Positions 1 through 44,600 of a stretch of DNA of 48,567 nt are shown piece by piece. The notes below the pieces were generated by a model. The model ran no database searches and had not been told where the DNA came from. It worked only from the letters and a program-made list of their open reading frames with translations. The translations under genes and the position numbers were made by a program. The stretch lies in contig CALSCP010001831.1 of assembly GCA_943704425.1 (NCBI GenBank), forward strand, positions 1 through 48,567, written 5' to 3'. The first letter of the stretch is position 1. Each line of letters opens with the position of its first letter. Source of the stretch: Ministeria vibrans ATCC 50519 (lineage: Eukaryota > Protista > Filasterea).

Positions 1-370
1 GCAATCGGCGCAACGCTGGAGCGCATCGATGGACGCGCGTGAAGCTCTGACTGTCGGTTGAGGCGACTGACGGCAGCGACGTGTGGCAAAACAGGGGGGC
101 ATGATCATGACTCTCTCGAGGATATCTGAACACTTCGCCACACTTTGAAAGGAGAATCCTCGGACACTGGTCCTTAGCCTGTGCCCATGGACGAGGGACC
201 AAAACAGCGTTATCACAGTCTGGTAGATGGGGTGAGGAGACGGCATTGAGAACGCGAAGCGTTTCGTCCGTCTCCAACGAGAAAACGAAGAATACAGCCA
301 CTGCGGCGATGACGACGACGGAGAGAACGCTCACAGCACGAACTGATTTGCTTCTACTTGGGAGTCTCAT
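1..370 (-). CDS. 5' exon of a type-II membrane protein, paralog of the GT61 glycosyltransferase at 12739 (runs off window start)
   Basis: ATG at 370 opens MRLPSRSKSVRAVSVLSVVVIAAVAVFFVFSLETDETLRVLNAVSSPHLPDCDNAVLVPRPWAQAKDQCPRILLSKCGEVFRYPRESHDHAPLFCH..., open to base 1. It has a signal anchor. Bases 1-328 are the near-identical reverse complement of 12769-13086. Confidence 0.75.
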   Translation of the reverse strand, partial: MRLPSRSKSVRAVSVLSVVVIAAVAVFFVFSLETDETLRVLNAVSSPHLPDCDNAVLVPRPWAQAKDQCPRILLSKCGEVFRYPRESHDHAPLFCHTSLPSVASTDSQSFTRVHRCAPALRRL

Positions 371-560
371 ACGAATGAAAAAAAACTAAAAGAGTGAGAG
401 ACAGAGACTCAACTCACTCAAGGATGGAGACTGAATAAATGAGTGAGAGTTTCTTTTTGATCTTTCTCCTTATAAATCTAAAAATAATTTTCTTTTTGAC
501 TCTTGTTTCCACTGCTCTCTTTCTGCTTCAAACGGAGACCGGTATTCAAATATTGACGCA

Positions 561-789
561 ATGAGTCATCAAAGCGGAATTGTCGGTATGCATTCGATGT
601 CAACAAATTCACTCTCCCTGTCTGCCTGACTGTCTTGTGTGTCTCTCTCCCAACACCCCTTCTCTCTTTCTCTTTCTCTTTTAGTCTGTCGTGAACTCCA
701 AGAGAGATTCAGCGAGGCTCTGGCGGAGAATAGTTCGGTGCGAATGCTCCAGATCAACATTGTTGAAGGTCTCAAAGACAAAGAAAAAA

Positions 790-834
<45 letters not shown>

Positions 835-2021
835 ATGTTGCCTCGTCTGTGTCTGAGAACGCGCTCTGTTCGCCTGCATGCTCTTTGGTTGTGTTCTTTT
901 GCTGCAATCTGAAATATTGGTTTTTTTGTCTTCAAAGACCATATTGCAAAGGAGAACTTGTCAGTTCGCGTATCGGGGCTTTGTTTTCTGACATATCTTA
1001 TGTTATAGCCTTAAGCACGCAAACGCAGCCCATCTGGGTTCGGGAGGGGGGTTTTCTCTACATTTTTTTCCCATTTCAGCCGTTTCATTTCTCTCACCCA
1101 TTCTTTTGTAGAAGCACTCGTGGAGTCGTCGTCGTCAGATGCGGCAGGCACATGGCAAGACGACTACGATACGGCGATTCTGCCTCTACTCGACGAAACT
1201 AAGGTTCCAACTGCTTGATCAGCTCGTCTCCTTAACATCTATCGCACCACTGTTCTCCATCATCGCTGTAGGCGTCATACTTTGTGTTTCGGTCGGACAC
1301 GAAGAACGCATACGGCCCAGTGTGGCACTTTATTTGTTGGGTGCCCGATCACACACCAGTGCGCGAGAAGATGCTGTATGCTTCTACCCGTGCCACGCTC
1401 CGACGTGCCTTTGGGGATTACAGAATCGGCGACGAGGTATCAATAAGATGACACACAAACAGCCAAAACGAAAACGCCACAGAAAGCGACCGCGCACCCG
1501 CGTTAATGCGTGTGCTTGTGTGTCGACCTAAAAGCCACAGTACAATTTATACCACCCATCCACTCGCAGGTTTTCGGGACCTGCGAGAGTGACGTCACGC
1601 TGGACGGGCTTGAAAAACATCGCGAAAGCAGAGAGGCCCCTGCACCTCTGACTGCCCGTGAAGAAGAGGCAAATGAGATCAAGCGCGCTGAAGTGAGGAG
1701 TGATTGTCTTGATTTAAACCTGTCTGTATGTGTGTGTTGACAAACTCTTCTTTTTGATTTAGTGTGGGTCGGACATTGGCGCGTCGACGCGCAAGACGAC
1801 TCACAGCGGCGTGGCATTCCCTCTGACGGACGCAGCGCAGGGCGGAGTAGCTGCATTCAAGGCCGAGCAGAGTAACTACCTCCAGCTGGTCAGTTCTAGT
1901 TCTATACCACCAACTCTATCACGTTGCATTACTCTTTCCTATTATTATTTTATCACTTTGTTTCTCTCCATCACTTTGTTTCTCTCTGTTTCACTTTGTT
2001 TTTTCTCTCTCTCCCTGTCTA

Positions 2022-2077
<56 letters not shown>

Positions 2078-2376
2078 NNNNNNNNNNNNNNNNNNNNNNN
2101 NNNNNNNNNNNNNNNNNNNNNNNNNNNNNNNNNNNNNNNNNNNNNNNNNNNNNNNNNNNNNNNNNNNNNNNNNNNNNNNNNNNNNNNNNNNNNNNNNNNN
2201 NNNNNNNNNNNNNNNNNNNNNNNNNNNNNNNNNNNNNNNNNNNNNNNNNNNNNNNNNNNNNNNNNNNNNNNNNNNNNNNNNNNNNNNNNNNNNNNNNNNN
2301 NNNNNNNNNNNNNNNNNNNNNNNNNNNNNNNNNNNNNNNNNNNNNNNNNNNNNNNNNNNNNNNNNNNNNNNNNNNN

Positions 2377-2442
<66 letters not shown>

Positions 2443-3079
2443 ACGCACATACACACACACACGTGATCTAATCACTCCCTCATCCTTTCAGTGTTTGTGT
2501 ACTCTTGTCCGGGGTTTAACACAAAAATCAAGGAGCGCATGCTGTACTCTAGCTGTCGCAACACGCTCATTGACGAGCTCGAGCAGAGCTACGACATCAC
2601 CATTGACAAGCGCGTAAGTCCACATCAATTTAACACACCTTTTTAATTTAACACACCTTTTTTTCTTGGCTTCATCTCTCCTTCCCTTCTCTCCTTCCCT
2701 TCTCTCAACCCTAACCCTTCCCTTCTCTCTCTCTGTCTCTCTCTGTCTCTGTCTCTGTCTCTGTCTCTGTCTCTGTCTCTGTCTCTGTCTCTGTCTCCTG
2801 TCTCTGTCTCTGTGTCTCTGTCTCTCTCTATATATATTATATATATATATATAATATGTATAATATATTCATTTTTTTTCTTTGCATGTTCGCATTCCTC
2901 AGGTTGAAATTGGTGAGGCAAGAGACGTCAATGCAGAGGCGGTCGAGGAGGAGTTCCACCCGAGGCCAGTCGAGGCGAAAAAGAAGTTTTCACGTCCCAA
3001 GGCTCCGTCAAAGCGTGGTCCGCGCAAGTTGCTGCGTACCGAGAAGGAAGCCAGTGATACGCCTGACGAAATGAATTAA
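561..3079 (+). CDS. TWF: Twinfilin (two ADF-H domains plus capping-protein-binding tail), multi-exon; one exon probably lost in the N gap
   Basis: Spliced exons give MSHQSGIV..., WVPDHTPVREKMLYASTRATLRR, APAPLTAREEE, GVAFPL, VFVYSCPG..IKERMLYSSCR and the tail EEFHP...KKFSRPKAPSKRGPRKL. These match twinfilin throughout. All joins are GT-AG. Confidence 0.95.
2078..2376. other. Assembly gap (N run) between (CT)n and (CA)n microsatellites inside twinfilin
   Basis: Run of Ns. The twinfilin segment between NYLQL and VFVYS (start of the second ADF-H domain) is absent from visible sequence. Confidence 0.95.
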
Positions 3080-3275
3080 ATCAACTTTCACATAAACCCA
3101 GAACAAACGAAAGGCGAGCTCGCCACAATTAGTCTCAACGACGTGAGTGGAGACAGAGAACGAACGTATCCGCGCCCAAAGAATGCAATCAGTCAAAAAT
3201 AGTCAAAAATAGTCGATTAAGTCGAAATCAATATTATTTTCTCTTTCGTTTTAGCCAGAAAAAAATCATATCGCT

Positions 3276-5440
3276 ATGTCTGCACTCAAAGTCATTGGAA
3301 TTGGAAGCGGCGGTGTGGATGAAATGCGCGAGGCGCTCGACGAGGAGAAGGTGTGTCCGGCTCTTCCATCGATCTCCCTCTCTCTCTGCTTCGCGCCTGC
3401 ACTTCCCTCGGCATCCCCACGAATAGTGAATACCGCTGACAGGCGAGAGGGTCTTCTCTCGCCGCTTTTTTTTTTTTTTTTTTTTTTTCACGAATTTGTT
3501 TGCCGGCTTTTTTTTTTGACTTCTCTGGTGAAATGGTGCGCTGGAGAAGACCCCGTTTCTCCGACAGTATGTGTTTTTAAGCATTCTGTTGTGAGGCACG
3601 CTAGGTGCACAACGATATGTTCTATATTTTGCAAACTTTGCATTGCGAAAATGAACACAAACGAATGAGAGGGCAGGCACATCTTACGCCTTACTCGCCC
3701 TCAACCACAGGTCATGTTTGGTCTCCTGTACTTCCGCGTCGGCAGCGGCACGTTTGCGCGAGTGAAGCATCTGTTTGTGCACTTCAATGGGGACTCATGC
3801 AGTGGGATGAAGAAGGGGCGGGCGAATGCCAAGAAGGGCGAAGTCATCTCGGTGGTTGGGTCAACGCATGCCGAAGTTGGCATGGAGCAGCAAAAGGTCT
3901 GTGTGTGTGTGGTTGTACGTGTGTGTGCGTGTCTTTGTGGTGTGCGGTGTGTATGTGTCTTTGTGGTGTGTGTGTGTGTGTGTGTCTTTGTGGTGTGTGG
4001 TGTGTGTCTTTGTCGTGTGTGTGTGTGTGTGTGTGTCTTTGTGGTGTGTGTGTGGTGTGTGTGACTAATCGCATTGATTTTGTGTATGTTTCTCAGGAAT
4101 GCACACTTGACGGTATTTGGCGCAAGGTTCAAAAGGTGTTTGTTTCCGATGACGGCTCTTTCACCATCTCCAGGTATACTGCCCACCTTTCGAAGTGTTC
4201 TTGGGCTAATTATTATTGCTTGAATTTGACTGTTTTCTCTTGTGTGTCTGTGGTATCTTGCCAGCTTCAAAGGTAATGACAAACCAATCTGTTATTGCGT
4301 CTGATCGTTCTCATTACAATACCAGCCGATTACGAACGCATGATCCAGGAAGCCAAGGCCCGGGCGGCGGGCGGCGTCGATGCTACCAAGCGAAAGACGG
4401 CCAAAGACATGGGAATCAAGGTAGAGCGGGAGCGTGTGACCGCCTAGGTGGGGTTCTCATTTTCTGGTGTTCTAGGACACGTCCCGCATTCTGACTGCTC
4501 TGCGCAAGCCTGTGGGGCCTTTCAACTGGGGTCTGTTCAAACCTACTCAAGACGGGTTTACACTACACAATGCCGGCAGCGCAAGCGTCGAGGAAATGCG
4601 CGAATGTACGAACAAAAGGAATGAAGAATTGAGGCAAATTGACAGGTGTTGTTTGCTGGTTGTTTTCGTTGTTGTCTTTGTTGTTGTGTAGGGCTCGATG
4701 ACGGCGAGGTGCTTGCTGGTCTGCTGCGCATGGGATTCGGAAAGGGACAGTTCCGTCGCACTAAATGGGTCTCGTTTTGGTGGTCAGGGGAAGGGTAAGA
4801 ATGCGAGGACTCTTTTACATTTTACAAAACATTTTCTATTCGTAGTGTGTCCGCGGTGAAGCGCGGAAAGGCCAACCAGTTGCAAGGGAACACGCTGAAG
4901 GCACTGGAGCCATTTGCACTGACTCTGCAGGCGACGCACGAGAGCGAACTCACGCTCAAGATTATCATTGACAAGGTAACGAACCAGGAGAGACCGTCAG
5001 ACAGACAGATATTATATATATATATAATAGAGAGAGGGAGAAAATTCAAAGTGAGAGAGATGGAGAAAAAAAGTGAGAGAGAGGGAGAAAAAAAAAGTGA
5101 TAGAGAAAAACTTTGATAGAGAGAAACTGAGTAAGAAACAAAGTGATAGAGAGAAACTGAAAAGAAGAAGCAAGAAAGACTTACGGCCCACGTTGTTGGA
5201 TTGCAGGTCAAGAAGTCGACAGTGGTGGATGGGGATGGGGCGTCGGCCGAAGGGGACGGGGCCGACCCGTACTCGATGGAGGCCTTCTTGGCGGCTCTTA
5301 ACGAGGAGATGGAGGCCAACAAGGAGTTTTTCGGTGCCGACGAGTCGTCGTCGTCAACCGTCACTGACTCTGTTGAGGAGGCAGTCAAGCTCATCCGCGC
5401 CGACAATGCCTACAACTGGGGTCTCTTTGCATACGAGTAG
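3276..5440 (+). CDS. Coactosin/drebrin-like ADF-H protein made of two circularly permuted repeats (9 exons, including an 8-nt microexon)
   Basis: Spliced product: MSALKVIGIGSGGVDEMREALDEEKVMFGLLYFRVGSGTFARVKHLFVHFNGDSCSGMKKGRA...ILTALRKPVGPFNWGLFKP...AGSASVEEMREWLDDGEVLAGLLRMGFGKGQFRRTKWVSFWWSGEGVSAVKRGKA...AVKLIRADNAYNWGLFAYE*. The coactosin motifs GSGG, R-x-K, W-x-G and NW-x-LF each occur twice. Confidence 0.8.
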
Positions 5441-5502
5441 AAAGTGCAAGGAAACGGAGGTTTTTATTTTATCTTATTAGTGTTAAGAAATGGAATAGTG
5501 TG

Positions 5503-9865
<4,363 letters not shown>

Positions 9866-24195: not shown

Positions 24196-26466
24196 ATGGA
24201 AGATGCTCTTGCTGCGCTCTCGTTGGGCCCCGACGAGTCCGTGGCAGATTGGGTAGCGACTCTGTCGACGTCTCGTCTGCTGGAGGAGCTGAAAAAGCGC
24301 GGCGAGAAGACAGGGCCGGTGAACAAGCGAACGCGACCGCTGTTTGAAAAGCGTCTGCTTGCCGCCATGGGTGCCAGTGATTCGGTGCGCTCGGCGGCGT
24401 CGCTGGCCGCGGCGGGCTGCACCGCATCCACCCCTCCTGCTTCTGCTGCTGCTGCCCCGGCCACCCCCTCCGCACCCGCCGCCGCCGCCGCAGCAGCAGC
24501 AGCAGCAGAGGCAGCGCAAGAGGCGCCTCTTTCAAACACCGCGCTCTTTGTCGTCGTCGTCGCTGGTCGCCCTCAGCTCGTCGAGCATTTCCGCGATGTT
24601 TTGGGTCTGCTCAAGGAGCACGGGGGAGGCGCACACTTTTTCAAGCACGCCACGGCCGAGGCGGCGCGCGAGCGGTTCGCGCGCCTCCAGGACAGTCCGG
24701 CGACGACGCAGCCGGCGACTCCGCGCGCGCGCAGTCTCAACCGCGATCCCGATTTGCCAAGCATGCTGGCGTTTCGCAAAGCCCTCGAGATGGGCGACGT
24801 GGCACGCTGCGAGCAGCTGCTGACTGAGATGCCGCGACTGCTCGTTGCCAAAAACGGTCGGCTGTTTGAGCTACATGCAGGCAAGCGACTGACTGCGTTG
24901 CACATTGCTTGCGAAGGATCGACCCAGAACCAAGCACGATTGCTGCGCTTTCTGTTGGACACGCTTGCAAGCGACCGCTACTGGGAGTGCTGGCGGGCGT
25001 TTGCGGAGCGAGTGGGCGCTGTGGATACAACGTTGCGTGCACGACGAAACATGGGCGACTATGTCAATGCCGAGGACGACTTGCACAACACGGCGCTGCA
25101 CTATGCTTCTCGCTACGGCCTTGTAGCGTGTGTTGAAATGCTTGTGGCAACGCCCGGCATTGATCTGTACGTGCTCAACACGAACCAAAAGGCCGAGATG
25201 GTCGTGGAGACACCCCGACGGCAAACGGCACGCGACTGTGCATGTGGTCTGTCGGGCTCGACCGCGACACGCACGCGCATCCAGCAGATCCTTGACGACC
25301 AGTGGATGATACCGCTGCTGCGCGATGCCACGTCCATGCCCATCGTGGCCGAGCCCATTGATCGCACGGTCGAGCTGGATATTCGAGTGGGGGCTCTGGT
25401 GGAGTGCTCGGATGAGCCTGACTCGCCCGACGAGCGAGCACTGCCGTCGTCACTGTCGCCACCCTCCAATACGCCCAGCACCAACAGCATCAGCAACAGT
25501 CCAGCGCAGCTCCAGTCGCCCTTGACAATGGCGATGGCGAGCAACAGTGCGCTCTCGCGGCTGGATGAGCCCCAGACACCGTCGCCATCGCCGCACCGTC
25601 GTCGTGTTGCCTCGCCTGCGTCGCGCGGTGGCAGTGCGCGCTCGTCGCCCCGCTCTGCTCTTGATCCCGAACTCAAAGTGCAAGCAATGATGGGTCCGAT
25701 GAGTCGAGCGAGTGCGGCCGAGCTGTGCCAGTCGTGGCGGCGGACACCGCCTCGTCGACGAAACAAGGGAGGGGGCGAGTCATCGGGCGGTGTGGCGAGT
25801 GAAAGTGTGCGAGTGCTACGTGTGACAGATGCGGAGCGAGGCCTGGAGCGAGTGGGTCGGGGACTGGCGCGAGAGCGAGGTGTGGAGTGGCTGGAGGTGT
25901 GGGCGTGGCTGCGGGATGGACGGCTGGACGGACGGGGCGAGGAGGATGACGGGGTGGTCGAGCGGCTGCTCGAAACACATCTGACGCGCACAGGGGCACC
26001 GTTTGTAAATGGGGAGGAGGCGAGCGAGGAAGACTCGACGTTGTTTCGACGCTTGCGCGATCGGTCGTTTGGGGAGGGATCGCGGGTGCGCGAGTGGGGA
26101 GTGCGCGTGGCACAGCGGATTGTGGAGCATGGCGTGCACGAGGGGGCATGGCCTCGGGCGGTAGGGGCGGCGGATTTGGGAACGGCGCAGGGACGCCGGC
26201 AGCTGGAAATGCACCTCTCCAAGACAGGCGAAGGGTTTGTGTGGGGTGGCAGTGTGACCCTGGACGACTATCTGGCGTGGGTGGCGGTGGGGGAACACAC
26301 GCGCAGTGGTGGGGACAGTGATGGAGGTGGGGCGTTGACGGCGGAGTGGCGGGCGCGGGTGGGGGAGCGGGTGGAGCGGTACCCGCGCGTGTACGGAGCA
26401 GACCGGGCGCAGTGGCCGCGCGGAGTGGCGCGCCGACGATTGCGCTATGACGACGACGACGACTAA
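24196..26466 (+). CDS. ANKLE2: ANKLE2/LEM4-like protein (LEM, Caulimovirus-like domain, ankyrin repeats, conserved C-domain), intronless
   Basis: LEM motif LSTSRLLEELKKRGEKTGPVNKRTRPLFEKRL; ankyrin TALHIAC and NTALHYASRYG..CVEML; ANKLE2 motifs AMMGPMS...W..TP, DAERGLERVGRGLA...WLEVWAWL and DLGTAQGRRQLE. Confidence 0.85.
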   Translation: MEDALAALSLGPDESVADWVATLSTSRLLEELKKRGEKTGPVNKRTRPLFEKRLLAAMGASDSVRSAASLAAAGCTASTPPASAAAAPATPSAPAAAAAAAAAAEAAQEAPLSNTALFVVVVAGRPQLVEHFRDVLGLLKEHGGGAHFFKHATAEAARERFARLQDSPATTQPATPRARSLNRDPDLPSMLAFRKALEMGDVARCEQLLTEMPRLLVAKNGRLFELHAGKRLTALHIACEGSTQNQARLLRFLLDTLASDRYWECWRAFAERVGAVDTTLRARRNMGDYVNAEDDLHNTALHYASRYGLVACVEMLVATPGIDLYVLNTNQKAEMVVETPRRQTARDCACGLSGSTATRTRIQQILDDQWMIPLLRDATSMPIVAEPIDRTVELDIRVGALVECSDEPDSPDERALPSSLSPPSNTPSTNSISNSPAQLQSPLTMAMASNSALSRLDEPQTPSPSPHRRRVASPASRGGSARSSPRSALDPELKVQAMMGPMSRASAAELCQSWRRTPPRRRNKGGGESSGGVASESVRVLRVTDAERGLERVGRGLARERGVEWLEVWAWLRDGRLDGRGEEDDGVVERLLETHLTRTGAPFVNGEEASEEDSTLFRRLRDRSFGEGSRVREWGVRVAQRIVEHGVHEGAWPRAVGAADLGTAQGRRQLEMHLSKTGEGFVWGGSVTLDDYLAWVAVGEHTRSGGDSDGGGALTAEWRARVGERVERYPRVYGADRAQWPRGVARRRLRYDDDDD

Positions 26467-31054: not shown

Positions 31055-34000
31055 ATGTCCAGCTTGGAAACGGATGCCCACGAGGTTAGTACTTAACAAC
31101 AGAAACAACTTACAGCTCTCTTGAACTACCAAGCACCAAGGGTTGCACCTTGCGCGTGATTCTCTTGTTTATACTGTTTTTTACAATGAGTCTCATTTGC
31201 AATACCCGTCGCCTTGACAACCGCCCACAATACCCGCCTTTCCTTCATAGATCGACCCCAATGCTGCGCTACAATCTCGTCTCTATTCAGATGGCGCCAT
31301 GTACAGCTCCACGACATCTAGTTCGCGCCAACACGACGTCACAAAGAGAGTACTACTTCTTTCGCTAACCCTGACCCTAACTAATCCTTTCTTCGTATTA
31401 ATATTGTGTGCCTACCTCATCTATATATCTATATAGACCCTCAAGCCTATAGTTTGTCGGCCATATGTTTATGACCTGGATCAGGTGCCCACGCCACGCC
31501 CACCCCTGTCGAAACGAACAAGCTTTTCGACTGCAGCCCAACACACTGCCGCCACTGCCGCCATCAAATTGACGCCTCTCTCCACACCCCCTTCGACAGT
31601 AACAGACGAATTGCCACACCTGCCAACATCTCTCAAGCACCTGCAAGACGTCTGGTTTCAGCAGCGAGGAGCGCAACCGCAACCAGCCGATTTACTGGCG
31701 TTGATTGATTGCGCCCGAAAAAACTCCCTTCCCATGGCCACCATCGAATCCCTAGCCTCCAATGGCTTCATCTACCTTCAGCCAACTTGCGCGCGCCACC
31801 ATTACGACTACTCCACTTACGCCTTGCACATCGTGCCCCACCAACAAGTCGATCGACACAACTACTACACCCTTAGCAACGCCGGCCTCACCCACACTCT
31901 CGATGGCGAATCCGAGTTCCTCACACTCGACCAGTGGGAACGCGACATTCTCAACTACCGCAAACTCACGCAGCTCCGCGTGTTTCGTCAACATCGCTTG
32001 CTCAAAGCCCTCAAGCTGTGGCACTTTGTTGTGCGTCGCAGATCCTTTCTGGCGCATCAGCACTCTCTCGATTCCCTTCTGTTACACGGTGATGCGCCCG
32101 TGCGCTCGGCGCTCCTCGCCATCCGCCACACCTACCTCAACTCCATCGCATCATGGCAGCTACTGGCTACGGAGTCCCACGAAACGTACTCACTTGACGC
32201 GTTCATGGCCAAGCAGCGGGCCACCGTCAGGTTGGTTCGCCGTCGTCTCGATGACACACGTGCGTATGCACTCACCACTGTCCTCGAAGCTTGTCAAGCG
32301 TCGCTTGACCAACAAGATTTTTCCGCCATGAGCAGCACATATTCTCACAGTGGAAAGGGAAACAGCGTGTCGTACACGGAGCAGGCGGCGAAACGCGCTC
32401 ACTGCAAACGCCTAGCCTCCTTTGTAAGACTCACCGACTACATGACCAATTCTTTTCTCCACTCGGTCGTCCTTTCGTCCACCTCCACACTTCTCTCCCT
32501 CGTTCAGTCTCGTGTTCAGCTCCCAATCAGTGCCGAGGGCGACGACGCTGACGTCAACAACAACAACAGCAACAACCTCGTGGATGCGCCCGCCCTCTTT
32601 CGCACCATGGTTGTGCTCGAGCTCAACGACACCGCCAGCGACCTTGCTTTCGCACCCGCTCTGCCCCTGTTCACCACGGCAATGTATCAGCTTGTTGATC
32701 TCTTCCGCACGACAGTCATCTCCACGCACAGCCTCGTCACCGACCCCATTCTGGCGGACTACATCAACCCACGCATCAACACCAAGCTCGACCTCGATGA
32801 CCTGCCCGCAGGTCCTTCGCTCGAGGCTGTCTTTAACGAAGACGAGCACTTTCTCAATCTCACCCACTTGATTGGTACGTCGCTGCGCGTTGCCTTTGAC
32901 GAGGCTGCCCGCTTTGCTCTGACGCTCGGCCACATTCGTGACTACTGTGTCGAGAGTAAGTCGTTCACCGTCGACGATGACTGCCGCAACGATGACATCT
33001 CTGTTAACGACTTCCGCGGCCATCTGGTACGCCTCACCCAACAAGAGCGCACCATCCTTGATCTCGAGTCGTCTCGCAACACGGGCGTGATTCTCGTTGA
33101 GCTACCCGAACTCCAGCGCCAGGCTTTGCCCAGTGTGCGCGCCTGCATCCGTCGCATCGACTTGGTACTGCCACGTCGCGTCCACACTAAGAACGAGAGA
33201 CTCCTCGCCTGTATTGACGATGCCTGCACGCGTCTCGAGCTCTCACCCGCCAACATCACCGAGTCAGTTGCCTGGCTCAAGTTCCTCGAAGACATCCTCG
33301 ACCGCACCCAGTCCATCGAGTCAGACGCCCTCAACGTCTCGCAGCTCTATTCGCTCCTGCAGGAATTCCAAATGGCCGTACCCCCCGAACACGTTGCCAT
33401 CTTTCAGACTCTGTCGCCGGCTCTCAACCGTCTCAAGACGACCGTCATCGAGGCGGAGTCGCAACGCGAAGAGAACCTTGTTGCCTTTGCCAAAAATCTT
33501 CAAGGTGACATTGCGCTGCTGCTAGAGGATGCGGACAGCATTGGTCGAGCGGCCGCCGAAGAGCGCGTCTTTGATTCTACGACGGATCCCCTGGACGCCA
33601 TTGAGTTCCTAAACAATCTCGAGCGGCGTTGTGTCCGTCTCCGTCGCACCGCCGACACCTACACCGGCTACCAGCGGAGTTTCCTTCCCAAGTTACCCGC
33701 TGCTGACTTCTCTGATCTCACCACCGCCCACGATGCAGTCATCAAACGACTGCGCATGTGGACCGAATTGCGCGACTGGACAGCACTGGTGGACTCGTGG
33801 ATGAGTGGCGCCTTTGCAACTTTTGACGTGAGTGACGCTGGCGAACGGTTGCGTGCATTCCAGCGCGAAACGTACACTCTCGAGAAAGTGCTGCCAGCCA
33901 ATGCCGTCGTCGAGTTGCTCAAAGAACGCGCACTAGAATTCAAGGTCTACCTTCCATGTCTAGTAGACCTGTGCAACGACGCGCTCAAGCCGCGTCATTG

Positions 34001-35536
34001 GGACGCCATTGAGTTTGCAACTGGACTCAGTGTGCCACGTGACAGATCGCTCACCTTGCGCGCTCTCATAGCGACGGGCCTTCTTGAGCACCACGCAGAC
34101 ATTCAGGCGGTGTCGAGTCAGGCCAGCAGCGAGGCAGCCCTCGAGAAAATGCTCAAGAAGATCGAGGATGCCTGGGGTGCGTGTGAGCTCACGGTTCTTC
34201 CCTACCGTGACACCAAGGACGTGTACATTCTTGGGAGTGTCGACGAGATTCAGTCGCTCCTTGACGACTCGGTTGCCTCTGTGTGCACCATTGCAGCGTC
34301 GCGTCATGTGGGCCCCATTCAGAAGCAGGTCGACGACTGGCAACACAACTTGATGCTCTTCAGCGACACTCTCGACGCCTGCATGGTCTGCCAGCGCGCC
34401 TGGCTCTCCCTCGAGCCTGTCTTCACCACACCCGATATTCAGCGACAGCTGCCCGCCGAGGCAAAGACCTTCCTCTCGGTGGACAAGACCTGGAAGGATG
34501 CCATGCGCCAAATTCAGCGCAAACCCGCAGCCATACCAGCCGGTACCGAGCCAGGTCTGCTTGAGAGCATGCTTGCGAGCAACTCAACGCTCGAGCAGGT
34601 GCAAAAGTGCCTCGAAGAATACCTAGAGTCGAAGAGACTTCTCTTCCCGCGCTTCTACTTTCTCTCTAACGAAGGTCTCCTCGAGATTCTTTCGCAAACA
34701 CGCAACCCACAGGCAGTGCAACCACACCTTCGCAAGTGCTTTGATTCGTTGCGCTCGCTTGACTTTACATCAGCCGTTGACATTACGGGCATGTTTAGTG
34801 CCGAGGGCGAGCACATTGCATTTACCAAGACGCTCAAGGCACGCGGCAATATTGAGGCGTGGCTCGGTGCTGTTGAGCAGATGATTGTCGACACACTACA
34901 GCGTCTCACTAAGACGACACTGGCGGCGCATGTGAATGAGTCACGTGAGACGTGGGTACTGGGTGACCATCCAGGTCAGATGGTGCTCACTGTGGCCCAG
35001 ATTGTCTGGTGTCGTCAGGTCACGGACTGTCTCGAGTCGCACAACCCAAGTGAGGCACTCGCGCGCATGGAGAACACTTGCGAGAAGAACCTTGCACACC
35101 TCGCCGAGATTGTGCGAGGTCCTTTGACGTCGCTCAAGCGTCGTGTCATCACGGCGCTCATTACACTCGATGTGCACGCCCGTGACATTGTCACGCAAAT
35201 GGTGCGTCAAGAGTGCTTCAGCACAAACGACTTTGAGTGGATGCGACAGCTGCGCTACTACTGGGACGCCGAGACCGACGTGTGCTTGGTGCGCATGAGC
35301 AACGCTGTATTCCACTACGCGTATGAGTACATCGGCTGTCAACCCCGTCTCGTCATTACTCCGCTCACAGACCGTTGCTACCTCTGTCTCACCGGTGCTC
35401 TCCAGCTTGATCTTGGTGGTGCACCAGCTGGACCTGCTGGAACAGGAAAGGTACAGCATTGTTTCGATTTTTTGGTTTGCAATGATTCTATAATAATATA
35501 AATAATAATAACAATAATAATAATAATAATACAATC

Positions 35537-35618
<82 letters not shown>

Positions 35619-38600
35619 TATTATTATTATTATTATTGACATTATGATTGTTAATATTATTCTATTCATTATTTTCATTGTTTATTTTTGATTTTTCATT
35701 ATTTTTATTCTGTTTCTGCACTCTTTTCCATTTCACTTTATTTGTTCCTATTCTCTATTCCTATTCATTTTTAACGTTTTGTTGTGCAGACGGAAACCGT
35801 CAAGGACTTGGCCAAGGCGCTCGCAAAGCAATGTGTTGTGTTCAATTGCAGCGAGGGTCTCGACTACCGCATGATGGGACGCTTCTTCAGCGGGTATGCT
35901 TGACCTTGGTCCCCCTTCACTCCTAACTCTCTTCTCGTTTTCTCATAGTCTCGCTCAATCAGGTGCATGGGCGTGCTTCGACGAGTTCAATCGCATTGAC
36001 ATCGAAGTGCTTTCAGTCATTGCTCAGCAACTACTGACCATTATGCGTGCGAAACAGGCACACGCCTCCAACTTTCTATTTGAGGGACGACACATCTCGT
36101 TGGTGCCTTCCTGTGCGGCATTCATCACCATGAATCCGGGTTATGCTGGTCGCACTGAGCTTCCAGGTGAGTAATTGAATGCGACCAATTTTCACGAATT
36201 TAGTAGTACATACCATACGAACGGAGTAGTCAGCGCGACTCAATAGCACTCTTCTTTTTTTCTCCTTCCTTTTTTGCATTTAGACAACCTCAAGGCACTG
36301 TTTCGCCCCTTTGCCATGATGATCCCTGACTACAAACTCATTGCCGAGGTCATTCTCTACAGCGAGGGCTTTGCCTCGTCACATCTCCTTGCTCAAAAGA
36401 TGGTTCAAATGTACAAGCTGTGCAGCGAGAAGCTCTCGCAACAAGACCACTATGACTTTGGCATGCGGGCCGTCAAGTCGGTCCTTGTCATGGCGGGCGC
36501 ACTTAAGCGTGCCAATCCCGAGATTAGTGAAGGTGCGCCGCGAGAAAATAGCAGAGGATGGGAGGGAAGGAGAAAGAAGGAAAAATGAGTACTAACCATT
36601 TTGTTGTGTGTGCGTGTGTGTGTGTGTTTTTTTTCTTCTTTTTTTTTTTCCGTAGATGCTGTTCTCATTCGAGCCTTGCGCGACTCCAATTTGCCCAAGT
36701 TTCTCGCACAAGATGTGCCGCTGTTTCAGGCGATCCTTCAAGACCTGTTTCCTTCCATTGAAATCCCCGAGGCGGACGTAGGGCGTCTGCGTCTCACCAT
36801 TGAGGAGGTGCTACGCGACCGTCACCTCCAGGTGGTACCGGCGCTTGTGCTCAAGTGTGTGCAGTTCTACGAGACTATAAATGTACGTCACGGCGTCATG
36901 CTCGTGGGCCCTTCGGGGGGTGGCAAGACCACCAACTACGAGGTGTTGGCCGAGGCATTGTGCCGATTGCACGCTCAAGATTCGGCTGTATTGGATTTGA
37001 ACAACGGCCAGGCTGACTATGATCAGGTATGAGGAGGCACTCATCAAAAGTTGTCTCGGCGGTTATTTTTTTTTTTTTTTGCTATGTTTTCAGGACTGTG
37101 TTGGCTTCCAGAAATGCACTTATCGCGTTCTCAATCCCAAAGTAATCACCATGGGCGAGTTGTACGGAGAATTTGATGAGTTGTCGCATGAATGGACGGA
37201 CGGACTGCTCGCGTCGATGGTGCGCCAGGCGGTGAACGAACGCACGCCGGCCTACAAGTTCATTGTGTGCGATGCGCCTGTGGATGCGCTATGGATCGAG
37301 AACATGAACACAGTACTGGACGACAACAAAACGCTGTGTCTGGCCAATTCGGAGCGTATAAAACTAGACTCCAGTGTGCGAATGGTCTTTGAGTGTCAGG
37401 ATCTTGCCGTTGCCTCGCCCGCCACTGTCAGTCGCTGCGGCATGGTTTATATGGATCCGGCTGACGTGGGCTGGCGCCCTTTTGTGGAATCGTGGCTTGT
37501 GCGATTTGCAGCGCACGAGCATGTGCCAGTGTTACTTGCGACTCAAGTGCGCTCCCTCATTGATTGCTATGTGCCGCGCGCTCTTGACTTTGTGCGTGCG
37601 CACTGCTTCGAGCCGTTTGCTCAGGTTGACGTCAGCAAGGTCTCTAGCATGTGCGTGCTTCTGGATGCGCTCCTCACAACTGAGCACGTAGCACCCGAGA
37701 TCGACAACGAGACGCGCCTCGTGTCGTTGGGTGCCAGTGCTTTCATTTATGCGCTCGTGTGGGCGCTCGGCGGTAACCTGAACTGTCCTGGCTATGCTGT
37801 TTTTGATGTGTTTGCCAAGGAGCTTTTGGAGCCTCTGTCGGCCACTGTGGTCGTACCACAGCAGGACACGCTCTTCGACTACTACCTGGACTACGAGTGT
37901 GCTGCTTTGGCGTCGTGGGCCGATTCGGTGCCGGCCTTTGAGTACGACGCGAACATGAGCTACTTCGACATGCTCGTGCCTACGGTCGACACACAACGCT
38001 ATGGACATGTGCTGCGTGTGTGTGTGCTTGCTGACCAGCCCGTGTTGTTCACCGGCACCACAGGGGTCGGCAAGAGCGTCCTGGTTGCAGGCACGTTGCG
38101 GCAGTTGCAGCAAGAGGCGCATTTCGCGTGCTCCACAATCAACTTTAGTGCGCAGACACACAGTGGCAACACTCAAAAGCTGATTATGAGCAAGCTTGAG
38201 AAGCGCAGTGGCACGACGTACGGTGCGCCCGGCGGTGCGGAACGTGTGGTGCTTTTTGTCGACGACCTCAACATGCCCAAACTGGAAGAGTTTGGTGCTG
38301 TGCCGCCCATTGAGCTTTTGCGACAGTTGCTCTCTCAGCGTGGCCTCTACGACCGCGAGCGTCTTGTGTTCACTGACATTCATGATGTGACTCTCCTCGC
38401 CGCGTGTGGCCACCCGGGCGGTGGCCGAAACGCCATCACGCCGCGCCTGCTGCGTCATTTTCTCATTTTGAACATGCCCGAACCCAACGACACAACGCTG
38501 CGCACGATCTTCCAGGGGATCCTCGACGGTTTCTTTTCCGCGCACGAGTTTGCTACGGAGATTCTGCAGACTGCCGTGGGTCTGGTCAACTGTGCGGTTG

Positions 38601-41600
38601 ACGTGTACAATCGCCTCGCGTGCGAGATGCTTCCCACGCCCACCAAGTCTCACTACGTCTTCAACCTGCGCGACCTCAGCAAGTGCGTGCAGGGTCTTTT
38701 GCGCGCAACGCCCGCCACGGTGGACACACGCGACCAGTTGGTGCGCCTCTTTTGCCATGAGAACATGCGAGCGTTTCACGACCGTCTTGTCGACAGACAC
38801 GACCGTCGTTTCTACTGTCAGCTGCTGGCTCGCGCTGTACAAACATCTATGGACATTCACGTGGACGCGTCCATGCTCATGGCACAACCACCACTCTACG
38901 GCGACTTTTTTGTGGCGCACGTGGCGCCCGAGCAGCGCGTGTACCGCGAAGCACCCAACGACCCGAATGCGCTCGCGGCCCTTCTCGACGAGTATCAGGA
39001 GGATATGAATGCGCTGCAGTCGCGCGACCAGCGACTCGTGTTCTTCGACGATGCTGTGCACCATTGTTCGCGCATAGTGCGCACGCTGCGCCAGGAGCGT
39101 GGCAATGCTCTCCTGGTGGGTGTGGGGGGTGTGGGCAAGCAATCGCTGACGCGTCTCGCCGCCTTCATTTGTGGTTACTCGTGTTTTTCCATTGAGCTCA
39201 CGCGCGGCTACCGCTACCAGGAGTTCCACGAGGACCTCAAGGCACTGTATGAGCGAGCGGGTGTGCGCGGCGAGAACATCGTCTTTCTCTTTACCGATTC
39301 GCAAATTGTCGTGGAGGAGTTTCTTGAGGACATCAACAACATGCTCAACAGTGGCGAGGTGCCCGGTTTGTTTGAAGGCGAGGATCTCAACCGGATCATC
39401 GAGGGCATGCGACCAGTCGCCAAGGAGCACGACGTGGCGCAGGATCGCACATCGCTGTATCGCTTTTTTATTGAGCGTGTGCGTGCCCACCTACACATTG
39501 TGCTGTGCATGAGTCCCGTTGGCGACTCGTTTCGTCGGCGGTGTCGCATGTTTCCGTCGCTCATCAACTGCTGCACCATCGACTGGTTTACCGTGTGGCC
39601 GCGCGACGCGCTCCTCAGTGTCTCCCAGCACTTCTTCGCGTCGGGCGACCTAACTTCCGACACGCCCAGCCATGTTGCGGCTGCCCTCCCGAACGACCTG
39701 GGTACACGCCTTGCCCACATGTGCGTGGCCGTGCACACCAGTGTCGAGCAAGCGAGTGCGCAATTTTATGCGGAACTGCGACGCCACTACTATGCAACGC
39801 CCACGAGCTATCTGGAGCTCATTCAGTTGTATGCGCAGATGCTTACAACAAAAAAGCGTGCACTCTCGCTGCAACGCAGTCGTGTCGAGACAGGTCTGGT
39901 CAAGCTGCTGGAGACGAACGATGTGGTGGTGACCATTGAGAGGGAGCTACAGGCGCTGCGACCCGAGCTCAATAAGCGTGCGGGGGACACAGAAGCGCTG
40001 ATGGTGCAGCTGGCAGAGGATAAGAAGGAAGCGGACGCGCAGCGCAAAGTGGTTGCCAAGGAGGAGGCGGTGGCGCAAAATCAGGCGTTGGAGACTGAGG
40101 CGATTGCAAACGAGGCGCAGCGTGACCTTGATCAGGCTATTCCGGCGTTGAGTGCGGCCGTGGCGTCGCTCGATGCGCTCGACAAGCAGTCCATTGCCGA
40201 GCTGAAGATGTTCAACAAGCCCCCCGACATGGTGCGCACCGTGATGGAATCCGTCTGTATTCTGTTTGGTGTCAAACCCAATTGGGAATCGAGCAAGCAG
40301 TTGCTGGGCGAAGTGGGCTTTCTCAAGCGTATGGTTGACTATGACAAGGACGGCGTGTCGGACGTGACGCTGCGCAAGCTTCGCAAGTATATTGACAATC
40401 CGAGTTTCACACCGGAGATTGTTGCCATCACGTCGGTGGCGTGCAAGGCCATCTGCACCTGGGTGCGTGCACTCGACCTGTACGCCAAGGTGTTCCGCAC
40501 GGTGCAGCCGAAGCGCAAGCGACTGGCCGAGGCACAGGCAAGTCTGGTGGTGACACGTGCAGCGCTCGCTGAGAAACAGACGAGTTTGGAGGCGGTGGAG
40601 AAGAAGATTGCAAGACTGCAAGCGAGCTACGACCACAGCGTCAAGGCAAAGCGCACCCTCGAGGAACGCATTGAGGACACGTCTACGCGTCTCGAGCGAG
40701 CCAGTCGGCTCACGACGGCGCTTGACGACGAGCAGGTGCGCTGGGGTGAGACCGTGGAGCGAATCGACGAGGAGTTTGCCACGGTGGTTGGCGATGTGTT
40801 TATTGCGGCTGCCGCTGTCGCCTACTACGGAGCGTTTACAGCGCCCTACCGTCGCACACTGGTCGCTGGCTGGCTCGTGCTTTGTCTCGAACAGGGCATT
40901 CCTGTGGCGAGCGAACCGGCTCGTGGCGATAGTACTAATGGTGAGGGAGGCTCGACCGACGCGGCGCAACCAGCGGAAACTGGCTTTTCCATGGAGAAGG
41001 TGGTCACCGATGCGTACGAGATTCGCTCGTGGAACGAACATGGGCTTCCGCGTGACCCGCTGAGCTCAGAGAATGCGATTTTGGCGACGCGGGGTCGTCG
41101 TTGGCCGCTTATGATTGATCCGCAAGAACAAGCAAATCGATGGGTGCGCAGCATGGAGAGTAAGAGCGATCTCAAGGTAATCAAACTGGGCGAGCCCAGG
41201 TTTTTGCGAACCCTCGAGAACGCGATACGCTTGGGATTGCCCGTGCTGCTCGAGGACATTGGAGAGATGCTGGACCCTGTACTGGAGCCAGTGCTGCTGC
41301 GTCAGACCTTCAAGCAGGGCGGGCGCACGTTGATTCGACTGGGCGACGCGGACGTGGACTACAACGAGCACTTTCGTCTGTACATCACGACGAAGCTGGC
41401 CAATCCACACTTCTTGCCCGAAGTCTTTATCAAGGTGACCATTATCAACTTTACGGTGACCCAGCTGGGTCTCGAGGACCAGCTGCTGGCGGACGTGGTG
41501 CGTCTTGAGCGGCCCGAACTTGCACTGCAACGGAGCGAGCTCATTGTATCCATTAACAAGGACAAAGCGACGCTGCGTGCCATTGAAGATCGCATTTTGA

Positions 41601-44600
41601 AGATGCTCTTTGAGAGTTCGGGCAGCATTCTCGACGATGAGACGCTCATTTCGGCGCTGAACGAGAGCAAGACAACGAGTCGTGCCATTTCGCTACGCCT
41701 CGTGGCCGCCGAGGCGACCGAGCGTACCATTGACGTGGCTCGCGAGCGCTACCGTGGCGTCGCTGTGCGCGGTTCGCTTCTTTACTTTGTCGTGGCGAGC
41801 CTTGCGCTCATCGATCCCATGTACCAGTACTCGCTCAAGTTCTTCAAGGCTCTCTTTTGCTCCGTGATTGCTAGCCTTGAGCATGAGCAGCAACCGTACG
41901 GAGACGAGCATGAGGATCCGGTCGAGCGAGGTAACGAAGGCGACGAGCACAACAGCGATGGTGATGGTGACGAGGCTGAAAAGGCAGAGAATTGCGCTGA
42001 TGGTGCGGAAGCGGCTGTGGATGCGGTACTGGGCGAGCGTATCGAGACGCTGCTGCGCTTGCTCAATGAGAGCGTTTATCGCAATGTGGCGCGCGGTGTG
42101 TTTGCTCAACACAAGCTACTGTTGTCGTTTCTGCTGGGCACATCGATTGAACGACATGCAGGACGCATTGGCAGCACTGAGTGGACCATGATGTTGCGTG
42201 GACCCTTTTCGCCTTCGCTACAAATGCACATTGACTCAAATTCGGCTTCTGTCACTACAGCTCCCGCTGCCTGGCCTGGCGATGAGACGGGGCTGCCGCT
42301 GACAAAGGAGACCTGGGAGCTTTTGGTTGAGGCGGAACGTGTCCTACCGAACGTGCTTGGCTCGCTGTGTGAGCATATTAGTGCGAATGCTCACGAGTGG
42401 GAAGCGTTCTTCCGCGGCGACACGCCGTTCAGCGCCTGTCCTTGGTCCCAACGACTGACGGCCTTCCAGCGCCTAATGTTGGTGGCCCTGACACGCAAGG
42501 ACCGCTTCGTGCCGTCTCTCACCGCCTACATTGTGGCCGAGGTGGGTGCCGGCTACGTACAAGAGCCGGCAATCGACCTGCCGAGTGTGTTTGGGGACAC
42601 GTCATCGAGCACTCCGCTCATTTTTATTTTGAGTCCCGGTTCGGATCCCATGGCGGCATTTATGCGCTTTGCACATGAGCGCGACTACGCACATCGTGTG
42701 CAGACTATTTCTCTGGGTCAGGGCCAGGGCCCTGTTGCGGAGCAGCTCGTGGTGACTGCAATGACGACGGGCGACTGGGTCTTTCTGCAGAACTGTCACT
42801 TGGCCGCAAGTTGGATGAGCGAGCTTGAGCGTCTCGTGCGCGCACTTCTGTCGCCTGGCGAGGCACCGGTGCACCCTGACTTTCGTCTGTTTCTCTCGTC
42901 GATGCCCTCACGCGATTTTCCCGTGTCCGTGTTGCAAAACAGTGTCAAGGTGACCAACGAGCCACCGCGCGGTCTACAGGCGAATCTTAAGCGGACGGTG
43001 GCGGCGCTGGATGCGGCTGAATTTGACGCACACGAGCGCGGGAGCACCTGGCGACGCATGGTCATGGGACTGTGCTTTTTTCATGCGATTGTGCTGGAGC
43101 GCAAGAAGTTTGGCGCTCTTGGCTGGAACAAAGAGTACGAGTTTAACGAGAGCGATCGCGAGTGTGCTCTTTTCCAACTGGACATGTTTCTGCCCAAGTC
43201 AACAAGGCGACTTCGTGCGACAACGCTCGGTGCTGTTGATGTTCCTTTGCCTGACATTCCGTGGGATGCGTTGTCGTTTTTGACGGGCGAAATCACGTAT
43301 GGGGGACGAGTGACGGATCACTGGGACCAGCGTTGTCTCAAGAGCATTCTCAAGGGGGTTTTTGGTGAGAGTATTGTGGCGCATGTGAGCGACGCGTATC
43401 CACTGGGATTGGCTGGCAATGATAGCTCTGGGAGTGTGTATCGCTTGCTGGGCGCGAACGAGGGCGATGCGCACAGTGACTACGTGGACTATGTAACAAC
43501 GTTGCCGCTCGACGATGTACCCACGGTGTTTGGCCTGCACGCCAACGCGAACATCACGTACCAACTGAATGAGACGCGGGCGATTGTGGATGCGCTACTG
43601 GAGGTACAGCCGCGCGAGTACGTGGTGAGTGCTATGGCGACAAACGATGAGGATGACGAGGCGAAGAAAGAGGATGGAGGGGAGGGGGAGGAGGTGGAAG
43701 GGGGAGGAGCGGGTGTGCTGGGTGACGATGGCATTGTGTTGCGACTGGCCTTGTCACTCGGGTCGCGTGTGCCTGCTCTCTTAGTCGTCCACGAGGGTCT
43801 TTCGACTCTTTTTGTTCCCGACGCAATGGGCCGTGAAGATTCGTTGACGACAGTGCTGAAACAAGAGTGTGATCGCTTCAACCGACTTCTGCGAGCAGTT
43901 GCGGTGTCGCTTTCCGATCTGGTACGTGCCATTCGTGGTCTGGTGGTCATGTCGCCCGAGCTGGAGAGTGTTTATGGGGCGCTTCTCAATGGCAAGGTGC
44001 CGTCGGCCTGGGCCGCACTCGCGTACCCGTCGCTCAAGGTTCGTCATTTGATTGTTGACAGCACTTTTTGCTACACAAAATCTTTTGAATTAATCATTGC
44101 TTTTTTTAGTCGTTGAGTCCATGGATGGACGACCTGCAGGCGCGCGTGGCCTTTGTGCGCGATTGGCTGACCAATGGCGAACCGCGTGCCTTTTGGCTCA
44201 GTGGCCTCTTTTTCCCACAAGGTGTGTGGGGGGTTGTGTGAGAGAGAAAAAGGCATAGGAAGAGAGAGAAAGAAAGGAGGAAGAAAGAAACAAAGGGATA
44301 GAGAGAGAGAGAGAGCGAGGAGGGAGAAGGAACCAAATGGATAGAAAGACAGACAGACATAGACATAGAGTATGTGTGTCTGTTTGCGTGTGTTGAGCTA
44401 ATTGCTGAGTTTTATTTAGTGCTCTGAGTGTGGTGTATGTTTGATGATGCCTCATTGATGCCCAATGTACTGACTGTGGTTTGATAGGATTTTTGACGGG
44501 AGCACTGCAGCGACACGCGCGCAAGTACCGTCAGCCTATTGATGCACTGTCGTTTGACTTTGAGGTACTGGATCGAACTGAGTTTACCTGTGAGCAAGTG

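Follow-up and report, generated by a model that had tools for sequence, protein, structure and literature searches.

Coactosin-like proteins in which one ADF-H domain appears to be nested within another: a candidate clasped actin binder from Ministeria vibrans

Introduction

Proteins built from ADF-H (actin-depolymerizing factor homology) domains have been listed in five classes (PMC2447895), and the known classes are all made from canonical domains. A gene of Ministeria vibrans ATCC 50519 raises the question of how such a domain can be completed when its chain starts at strand 2 of the fold and ends with the helix 1 and strand 1 that normally come first. The gene lies at 3276-5440 on the plus strand of a 48,567-nucleotide stretch of DNA (contig CALSCP010001831.1, assembly GCA_943704425.1), the whole of which is called the window below. 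An earlier note, made from the sequence alone, had described its product as a circularly permuted tandem of two coactosin-type ADF-H domains. Our best reading, to which we give a probability of about 0.6, is a clasped, bivalent protein that would bind the side of filamentous actin (F-actin); its ring closure, actin binding, bundling and evolutionary origin are all matters that we infer.

Results

Gene model

The window belongs to a 29.7-Mb eukaryotic draft genome (contig G000:C1831) with GT-AG introns and abundant microsatellites. The gene at 3276-5440 consists of nine exons, every intron is of the GT-AG type, and the joined coding sequence (CDS) of 1038 nt (345 codons) contains no internal stop. 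Databases were searched exon by exon or via homologs, and the joined CDS was used for the frame check and for alignment of the protein to itself and to a paralog in the same genome. The exons are listed below.

Exon 1, 3276..3350, plus strand: ATG, then strand 2 of domain 1 (LKVIGIGSGGVDEM, 3285-3326); the equivalent start of the paralog is MAMKVIGTGSGGIDEM
Exon 2, 3711..3896, plus strand: core of domain 1, comprising strands 3-4 and the first part of the long helix
Exon 3, 4097..4173, plus strand: last part of the domain 1 core, then the beginning of linker helix 1
Exon 4, 4265..4272, plus strand: 8-nt micro-exon completing S-F-K-A
Exon 5, 4326..4420, plus strand: linker helix 1 (DYERMIQEAKA...), followed by a flexible linker
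Exon 6, 4476..4605, plus strand: mid-chain helix 1-strand 1 (ILTALRKPVGPFNWGLFKP, 4488-4544), then strand 2 of domain 2
Exon 7, 4692..4794, plus strand: core of domain 2 (LLRMGFGKGQFRRTKW)
Exon 8, 4846..4975, plus strand: remainder of domain 2, with its long helix, strand 5 and final helix
Exon 9, 5207..5440, plus strand: linker helix 2 (YSMEAFLAALNEEMEANKEFF), low-complexity linker, orphan C-terminal helix 1-strand 1 (5372-5437) and stop (5438-5440)

The reading frame depends on inclusion of the micro-exon at 4265-4272. Its inclusion is supported by the paralog, which holds FSIESLKRDYQK within one exon, and by the exon-wise collinearity with P0172, a transcript open reading frame (ORF) of the choanoflagellate Codosiga hollandica, in which exon 3 ends at residue 130 and exon 5 starts at residue 136. 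Exon by exon, P0172 is also the closest relative of the window gene (50-63% identity, collinear). Exon 2 is 57-62% identical to P0172 and P0171 and aligns with positions 58-109 of the Pfam profile Cofilin_ADF (E 0.017); exon 5 is 63% identical to residues 136-165 of P0172, and the matching region is helix 111-130 in the AlphaFold2 model of a homolog described below; exon 8 is 51-58% identical to family members and aligns with profile positions 96-125 (E 0.17). An alternative donor after exon 6 (gacag followed by gtgttg) was rejected in favour of one that yields MREWLDD, the sequence found in the homologs and in the paralog.

Order of the ADF-H elements in the chain

The window protein begins with MSALKVIGIGSGGVDEM, at strand 2 of the ADF-H fold. 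At the other end (VEEAVKLIRADNAYNWGLFAYE, then the stop codon) the chain stops directly after a helix 1-strand 1 element (NWGLFAYE), 5 residues past the NWG of strand 1. The canonical order, with helix 1-strand 1 first, is thus absent from domain 1 and present in domain 2. The sequence order is permuted, and the cut falls exactly in the turn of the strand 1-strand 2 hairpin. These ends, which the earlier note had pointed out, are borne out by the gene model, by the termini of the paralog and the family, and by the Pfam matches of homologs, which begin at profile position 23-34.

The chain also contains an internal repeat of two units, each running from strand 2 to the end of a core, through a linker helix, to helix 1-strand 1. 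The units are 27% identical end to end, their cores match each other by blastp with E = 4e-15, and a related helix is present in both linkers. The idea of two permuted units therefore stands as a description of the sequence repeat. It does not hold structurally: in the homolog model, the mid-chain helix 1-strand 1 packs with the core after it, and domain 2 has the canonical fold. With high confidence, we describe the architecture as the core of domain 1 from strand 2, a linker helix, a complete domain 2, a second linker helix, and the helix 1-strand 1 of domain 1. As judged from the structural model below, the chain appears to enclose one intact ADF-H domain between the two parts of a split one, and would then be a circular permutation of the whole two-domain tandem.

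Searching the genome itself with exons 6 and 9 revealed a paralog on another contig (G000:C2736; the 10-kb locus L018 is G000:C2736:29000-38999), whereas exon 2 as query found no second copy. The paralog occupies 5038-3002 of this locus on the minus strand, with six exons encoding 352 amino acids (aa), and is 48% identical to the window protein and collinear with it from the first residue to the last; the intron positions are partly different. It starts with MAMKVIGTGSGGIDEM and ends with TWGLFELK and a stop, at the same place as the window protein. The in-frame stretches 5' of the two ATG codons are unrelated and conservation starts at the ATG. The exon of the paralog that encodes domain 2 matches Cofilin_ADF with 32.1 bits (cut-off 22.4), and its best PDB sequence match is 1X67 (E 0.005). 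One paralog intron is filled by a minisatellite of about 40 bp (about 4400-3800 of the locus).

Further copies of the displaced element were sought with a hidden Markov model (HMM) of helix 1-strand 1, built from 155 family segments and run on the six frames of window positions 1-9000 and of the 10 kb around the paralog. In the window the mid-chain copy scored 27.8 bits (frame 4476-4688) and the C-terminal copy 21.5 bits (frame 5150-5437); the paralog likewise gave two copies, at 29.0 and 25.8 bits. No third element was present in window positions 1-9000 on either strand or in the 10 kb around the paralog, the next-best score being about 3 bits, and therefore neither region hides an upstream helix 1-strand 1 exon. 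A genome-wide Cofilin_ADF scan and the search with exon 2 gave no further ADF-H core on the contig beyond those of the neighbouring twinfilin gene.

A conserved family with the same layout

The 121-aa exon of the paralog was used as a HMMER query against 1.84 billion cluster representatives. This search returned 460 representatives at E<=1e-3, 209 of them at E<=1e-10; many have lengths of 330-390 aa and are matched in two or three stretches. Of the proteins fetched, 71 aligned to one homolog, P0001, in a single high-scoring segment pair over at least 90% of its length. Conservation was counted in an alignment of 78 family sequences. Both the mid-chain and the C-terminal Trp are invariant (78/78 each). 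The chain ends 0-10 residues past the C-terminal Trp in 48/78 (5-10 residues in all but one), whereas 26/78 have extra C-terminal parts after it, in some cases a PH domain or a WH2 motif. At the other end, 44/78 have no more than 15 residues ahead of strand 2, and none of the 14 sequences with a long N-terminal extension carries a helix 1-strand 1 there. Pfam agrees with these termini: Cofilin_ADF matches the N-terminal domain of homologs from profile position 23-34 to 124 and the second domain from 3 to 124. In P0001, residues 4-96 correspond to profile positions 29-124, and P0001, P0006, P0008 and P0025 match with 67-93 bits in two stretches each.

Members of named origin come from choanoflagellates (Codosiga hollandica, Stephanoeca diplocostata, Didymoeca costata and Salpingoeca urceolata), euglenids (Euglena gracilis, Eutreptiella, Entosiphon and Ploeotia), diplonemids (Diplonema papillatum KAJ9452684.1, Flectonema, Namystynia and Artemidia), the green alga Pyramimonas and a bicosoecid, a stramenopile; many of them are complete transcript ORFs with the same layout. 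A further ortholog, P0158, is an intronless 384-aa protein on a TARA marine picoeukaryote scaffold (L019, 4001-5155). It contains only two helix 1-strand 1 elements, and its gene is tightly packed, with a divergent neighbour 62 bp upstream and a convergent one 15 bp downstream. Judged by sequence comparison, the split-domain layout is no isolated case: it marks a conserved family whose database members number in the hundreds and span several eukaryotic supergroups. No fewer than 78 of these relatives, from several lineages of flagellated protists, keep the layout.

These data bear on the possibility that the unusual termini are an artefact, a missed 5' exon supplying helix 1-strand 1 or a missed 3' part giving a third domain. 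The assembly is a draft, with a run of N in an intron of the upstream twinfilin gene, and a candidate intron in the 5' untranslated region (UTR) can be discerned at 3144-3254 (donor GTGAGT at 3144, pyrimidine tract and AG at 3253-3254). Such an intron adds no coding sequence, because the open frame 5' of the ATG is closed by a TAG at 3252-3254, and this stretch is not conserved between the paralogs. The termini recur in the paralog, in the complete transcript ORFs and in the tightly flanked intronless ortholog; the HMM gave no extra element; and on the 3' side an opposite-strand ORF ends at 5503, only 63 bp past the stop. An artefact is scarcely credible on this evidence; the earlier note, which saw no upstream exon for an NW strand, agrees with it, as does the absence of a third domain.

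Several members are fused to WH2, WW or PH domains (among P0192, P0211, P0083, P0128, P0014, P0029, P0031 and P0042). In several of the fused members the N-terminal part also contains a helical hairpin similar by eye to the N-terminal dimerisation domain of CacyBP/SIP; Pfam gave no confirmation.

The entries are named in databases only as 'hypothetical' or 'ADF-H domain-containing', and the ESM Atlas gives generic cluster names. No match could be traced to animals, fungi or land plants, most matches carrying no taxon, and for this reason the family may have been overlooked. A literature search turned up no paper describing a coactosin-type ADF-H protein that is permuted, split or double. The split-domain architecture thus appears to be undescribed, as the earlier note had surmised.

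Predicted fold and probable completion of domain 1

The fold was predicted with AlphaFold2 for the homolog P0001, the 78-sequence alignment serving as input. The model has a mean predicted local distance difference test score (pLDDT) of 89.5 and a predicted template modelling score (pTM) of 0.65. Domain 1 begins with strand 4-10, continues through the remaining ADF-H core to helix 91-101 and is followed by linker helix 111-130. Domain 2 begins with helix 153-161 and strand 169-173 and runs through a second full core to helix 266-278. The remaining C-terminal part comprises linker helices 283-311, a disordered stretch (pLDDT <50 at 319-326), helix 334-341 and strand 351-356, the last two with a pLDDT of about 90.

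Residues 151-275 of the model superposed on residues 8-131 of human coactosin-like protein (CLP, COTL1) with a Z score of 14.3 and a root-mean-square deviation (rmsd) of 2.6 A over 124/130 residues (VIA-align). The same residues superposed on the domains of drebrin, HIP-55, Abp1, cofilin, GMF and twinfilin (Z in the range 10-14), and the best single-domain matches of the model in Foldseek were coactosins (TM score 0.77-0.80). Since residues 151-275 form a canonical coactosin fold, the mid-chain helix 1-strand 1 belongs to domain 2 and packs with the core that follows it. The earlier assignment of the mid-chain element to domain 2 is thereby upheld, and so is the coactosin/ADF-H identity of the protein, through the match to CLP together with the Pfam matches of the homologs and the paralog.

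The remaining question is the partner of the C-terminal element. Strand 1 lies at the edge of the ADF-H sheet, next to strand 2, and for an orphan helix 1-strand 1 the addition of an edge strand is thus a simple way to complete domain 1. P0036, a natural fragment without the domain 1 core but with all the other parts, was modelled as a control: the C-terminal helix was kept and the terminal strand was absent. Because the strand forms in the full-length model and not in P0036, its partner should lie in the N-terminal part. On the strength of these models, the C-terminal helix 1-strand 1 probably completes domain 1 in cis. Helix 1 and strand 1, with the invariant Trp, would fold back from about 230 residues downstream onto the exposed N-terminal strand 2, and the polypeptide would thereby become a closed ring with two ADF-H domains in it. 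Cis completion was one of the two outcomes that the earlier note had offered, and it is compatible with the monomer models.

The second outcome was completion in trans. In this case the tail of one molecule would enter domain 1 of another to give domain-swapped dimers or head-to-tail chains that would present many ADF-H domains to actin. A second chain could supply the edge strand as easily, in steric terms, as the chain itself, the linkers are long and partly disordered (319-326 in P0001), the pTM is 0.65, and the N-terminal helical hairpin seen by eye in some members might dimerise. However, the monomer model already satisfies the C-terminal element at high confidence, and the two termini, cut within the strand 1-strand 2 hairpin, adjoin each other in the cis arrangement. 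We consider completion in trans unlikely.

It is also conceivable that domain 1 is a stable, four-stranded, truncated ADF-H domain and that the tail stays apart from it. It would then dock on actin, on a partner or on domain 2, perhaps in the role of a ligand peptide or an autoinhibitory one. The persistence of the helix, with a pLDDT of 85-91, in the P0036 fragment is in keeping with such a tail, as is the lack of significant covariation on 74 sequences. Nevertheless, each residue of the tail has an aligned counterpart in the mid-chain helix 1-strand 1, an integral part of domain 2. The Trp of the tail, which in the mid-chain copy is a core residue, does not vary among the 78 sequences. Domain 2 already has a helix 1-strand 1 of its own, and the strand formed only when the domain 1 core was present. 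A separate tail is accordingly decidedly unlikely.

Several points weigh against the clasped, bivalent protein that we favour. The structural evidence comes from P0001, which is about 45% identical to the paralog, and not from the window protein. The pairing of strand 351-356 with strand 4-10 was deduced from DSSP, pLDDT and one truncation control, and in that control the C-terminal element still had a pLDDT of 85-91. Average-product-corrected (APC) mutual information between the C-terminal element and domains 1 and 2 showed a trend toward domain 1 that was not significant with 74 sequences. The relative placement of the two domains is not fixed, since the pTM is only 0.65. As to the gene itself, the Pfam scan of eight single exon translations gave only two weak matches to Cofilin_ADF; the window exons are 50-60% identical to the homologs that match this profile with 67-93 bits. 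Neither the window protein nor the paralog is present in the protein collections, where the best matches are about 60% identical, and thus no transcript of the exact window gene was found.

Predicted link to actin

In the alignment with CLP, the family motifs FxRxK of domain 1 and FRRTK of domain 2 fall on K72-R73-S74-K75. The window protein has FARVK and FRRTK, respectively, and the codons are as follows.

COTL1 R73/K75 equivalents, domain 1: Arg 3759-3761 and Lys 3765-3767, plus strand, exon 2
COTL1 R73/K75 equivalents, domain 2: Arg 4757-4759 and Lys 4763-4765, plus strand, exon 7

Across the 78 sequences, Arg and Lys are each retained in 74 in domain 1, and in 73 and 65, respectively, in domain 2. 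COTL1 that carries R73E/K75E fails to bind F-actin (PMC11260685), and domains of the coactosin and Abp1 types bind filaments with low affinity, do not bind monomers and do not disassemble filaments (PMC2447895). The retention of the Arg/Lys pair in both domains makes bivalent, coactosin-like side binding to filaments likely, and the WH2 motif of P0192 fits an actin context. By sequence and by analogy with COTL1, it is quite likely that proteins of the window family bind F-actin. Their activity would be to bind filaments laterally at two sites, stabilising, bundling or cross-linking rather than severing them; with two ADF-H domains clasped together, the avidity would rise, and two filaments or two protomers could be linked. 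Bundling or cross-linking itself, which is suggested by analogy, we put forward only tentatively.

Discussion

Relation to known ADF-H proteins

Coactosin/COTL1 (PDB 1T2L, 1T3Y and 1VFQ; Entamoeba coactosin 4LIZ) is the best structural match of the middle domain and shares with the family the R73/K75-type basic pair in the strand before the long helix, a pair that the family keeps in both domains. In contrast, coactosin consists of only one domain, unpermuted and about 140 aa in length, whereas the window protein has 345 aa and two domains, the first of them split; the family adds two linker helices, and its identity to human CLP is about 18-20%. The ADF-H domains of Abp1, drebrin and HIP-55 (PDB 1X67, 5Y1Z and 1HQZ) are also close structurally (Z 13.9), 1X67 being the top match of the paralog exon for domain 2. 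Those proteins have one canonical N-terminal ADF-H domain followed by charged or helical regions and an SH3 domain, whereas the window family has a different order and no SH3 domain was seen in it.

Twinfilin likewise carries two linker-joined ADF-H domains in a chain of about 340 aa. Its domains, however, are both canonical and complete and belong to the cofilin-like, G-actin-binding branch, and it has a capping-protein-binding tail. The window protein is coactosin-like, starts at strand 2 and ends at helix 1-strand 1; as the chain ends 5 residues past NWG, there is no such tail. Twinfilin 7CCC_B superposed on the whole P0001 model with an rmsd of 23-24 A. Exon by exon, the best PDB matches of the window gene are drebrin-like proteins and coactosin and not twinfilin; the neighbouring gene does match twinfilin.

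The same search also returned tandem arrays (P0148, P0038 and, from Vermamoeba vermiformis, P0134; E 1e-13 to 1e-22). These have 3-6 coactosin-like domains in the canonical register, with helix 1-strand 1 first and a complete domain last, and P0148 by eye is without the FS.E.F..AL.EE linker helix. The alignment of P0001 residues 9-357 to P0148 starts at strand 2 in the first P0148 domain and finishes at strand 1 in the third. The family could have arisen from a tandem array of ADF-H domains that was trimmed at both ends (permutation by duplication), an origin that fits both this register and the related helix in the two linkers. P0058 is a further relative with 3-6 domains in canonical register, and arrays of this kind possibly model the ancestral one.

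The family adds to the ADF-H proteins a conserved layout in which the two parts of one domain flank another, and it would be a natural case of circular permutation of a whole two-domain unit. It also provides a candidate for an actin cross-linker that clasps itself or forms chains. Its taxonomic range takes in choanoflagellates, the animal-relative protist of the window, euglenozoans, a green alga and a stramenopile, and an actin regulator in close relatives of animals is relevant to reconstructing the pre-metazoan cytoskeleton. More speculatively, the family might be a sixth ADF-H class, possibly predating the split of several supergroups. Its C-terminal element might then act as a reversible latch that switches between a cis-closed, two-headed side-binder and a released, head-to-tail, strand-complementing polymer that organises actin, tunable by load, phosphorylation or partner binding; we regard this proposal as a fairly remote one.

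Neighbouring genes and other features of the window

The upstream neighbour of the window gene is the following.

Twinfilin, 561-3079: stop at 3077-3079; introns with an N-run gap and long microsatellites

Its identity was confirmed by PDB matches, the exon at 1272-1427 corresponding to Twf1 68-114 (E 3e-17) and that at 2482-2616 to Twf1 254-291 (E 3e-9). The stop of twinfilin lies 196 bp before the ATG of the window gene, close to the 200 bp or so that had been estimated. A fusion of the two genes was rejected on account of this stop and of the paralog, whose upstream neighbour is a different gene.

Two other loci of the window were recognised. A single ORF of 756 aa at 24196-26466 encodes a LEM domain, ankyrin repeats and the third domain of ANKLE2 (Pfam), a gene type typical of animals and their relatives. 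The open frames at 31485-35501 (1338 aa) and 37019-44116 (2365 aa) together represent one dynein heavy chain, with DHC_N2, AAA modules, stalk and C-terminal domain.

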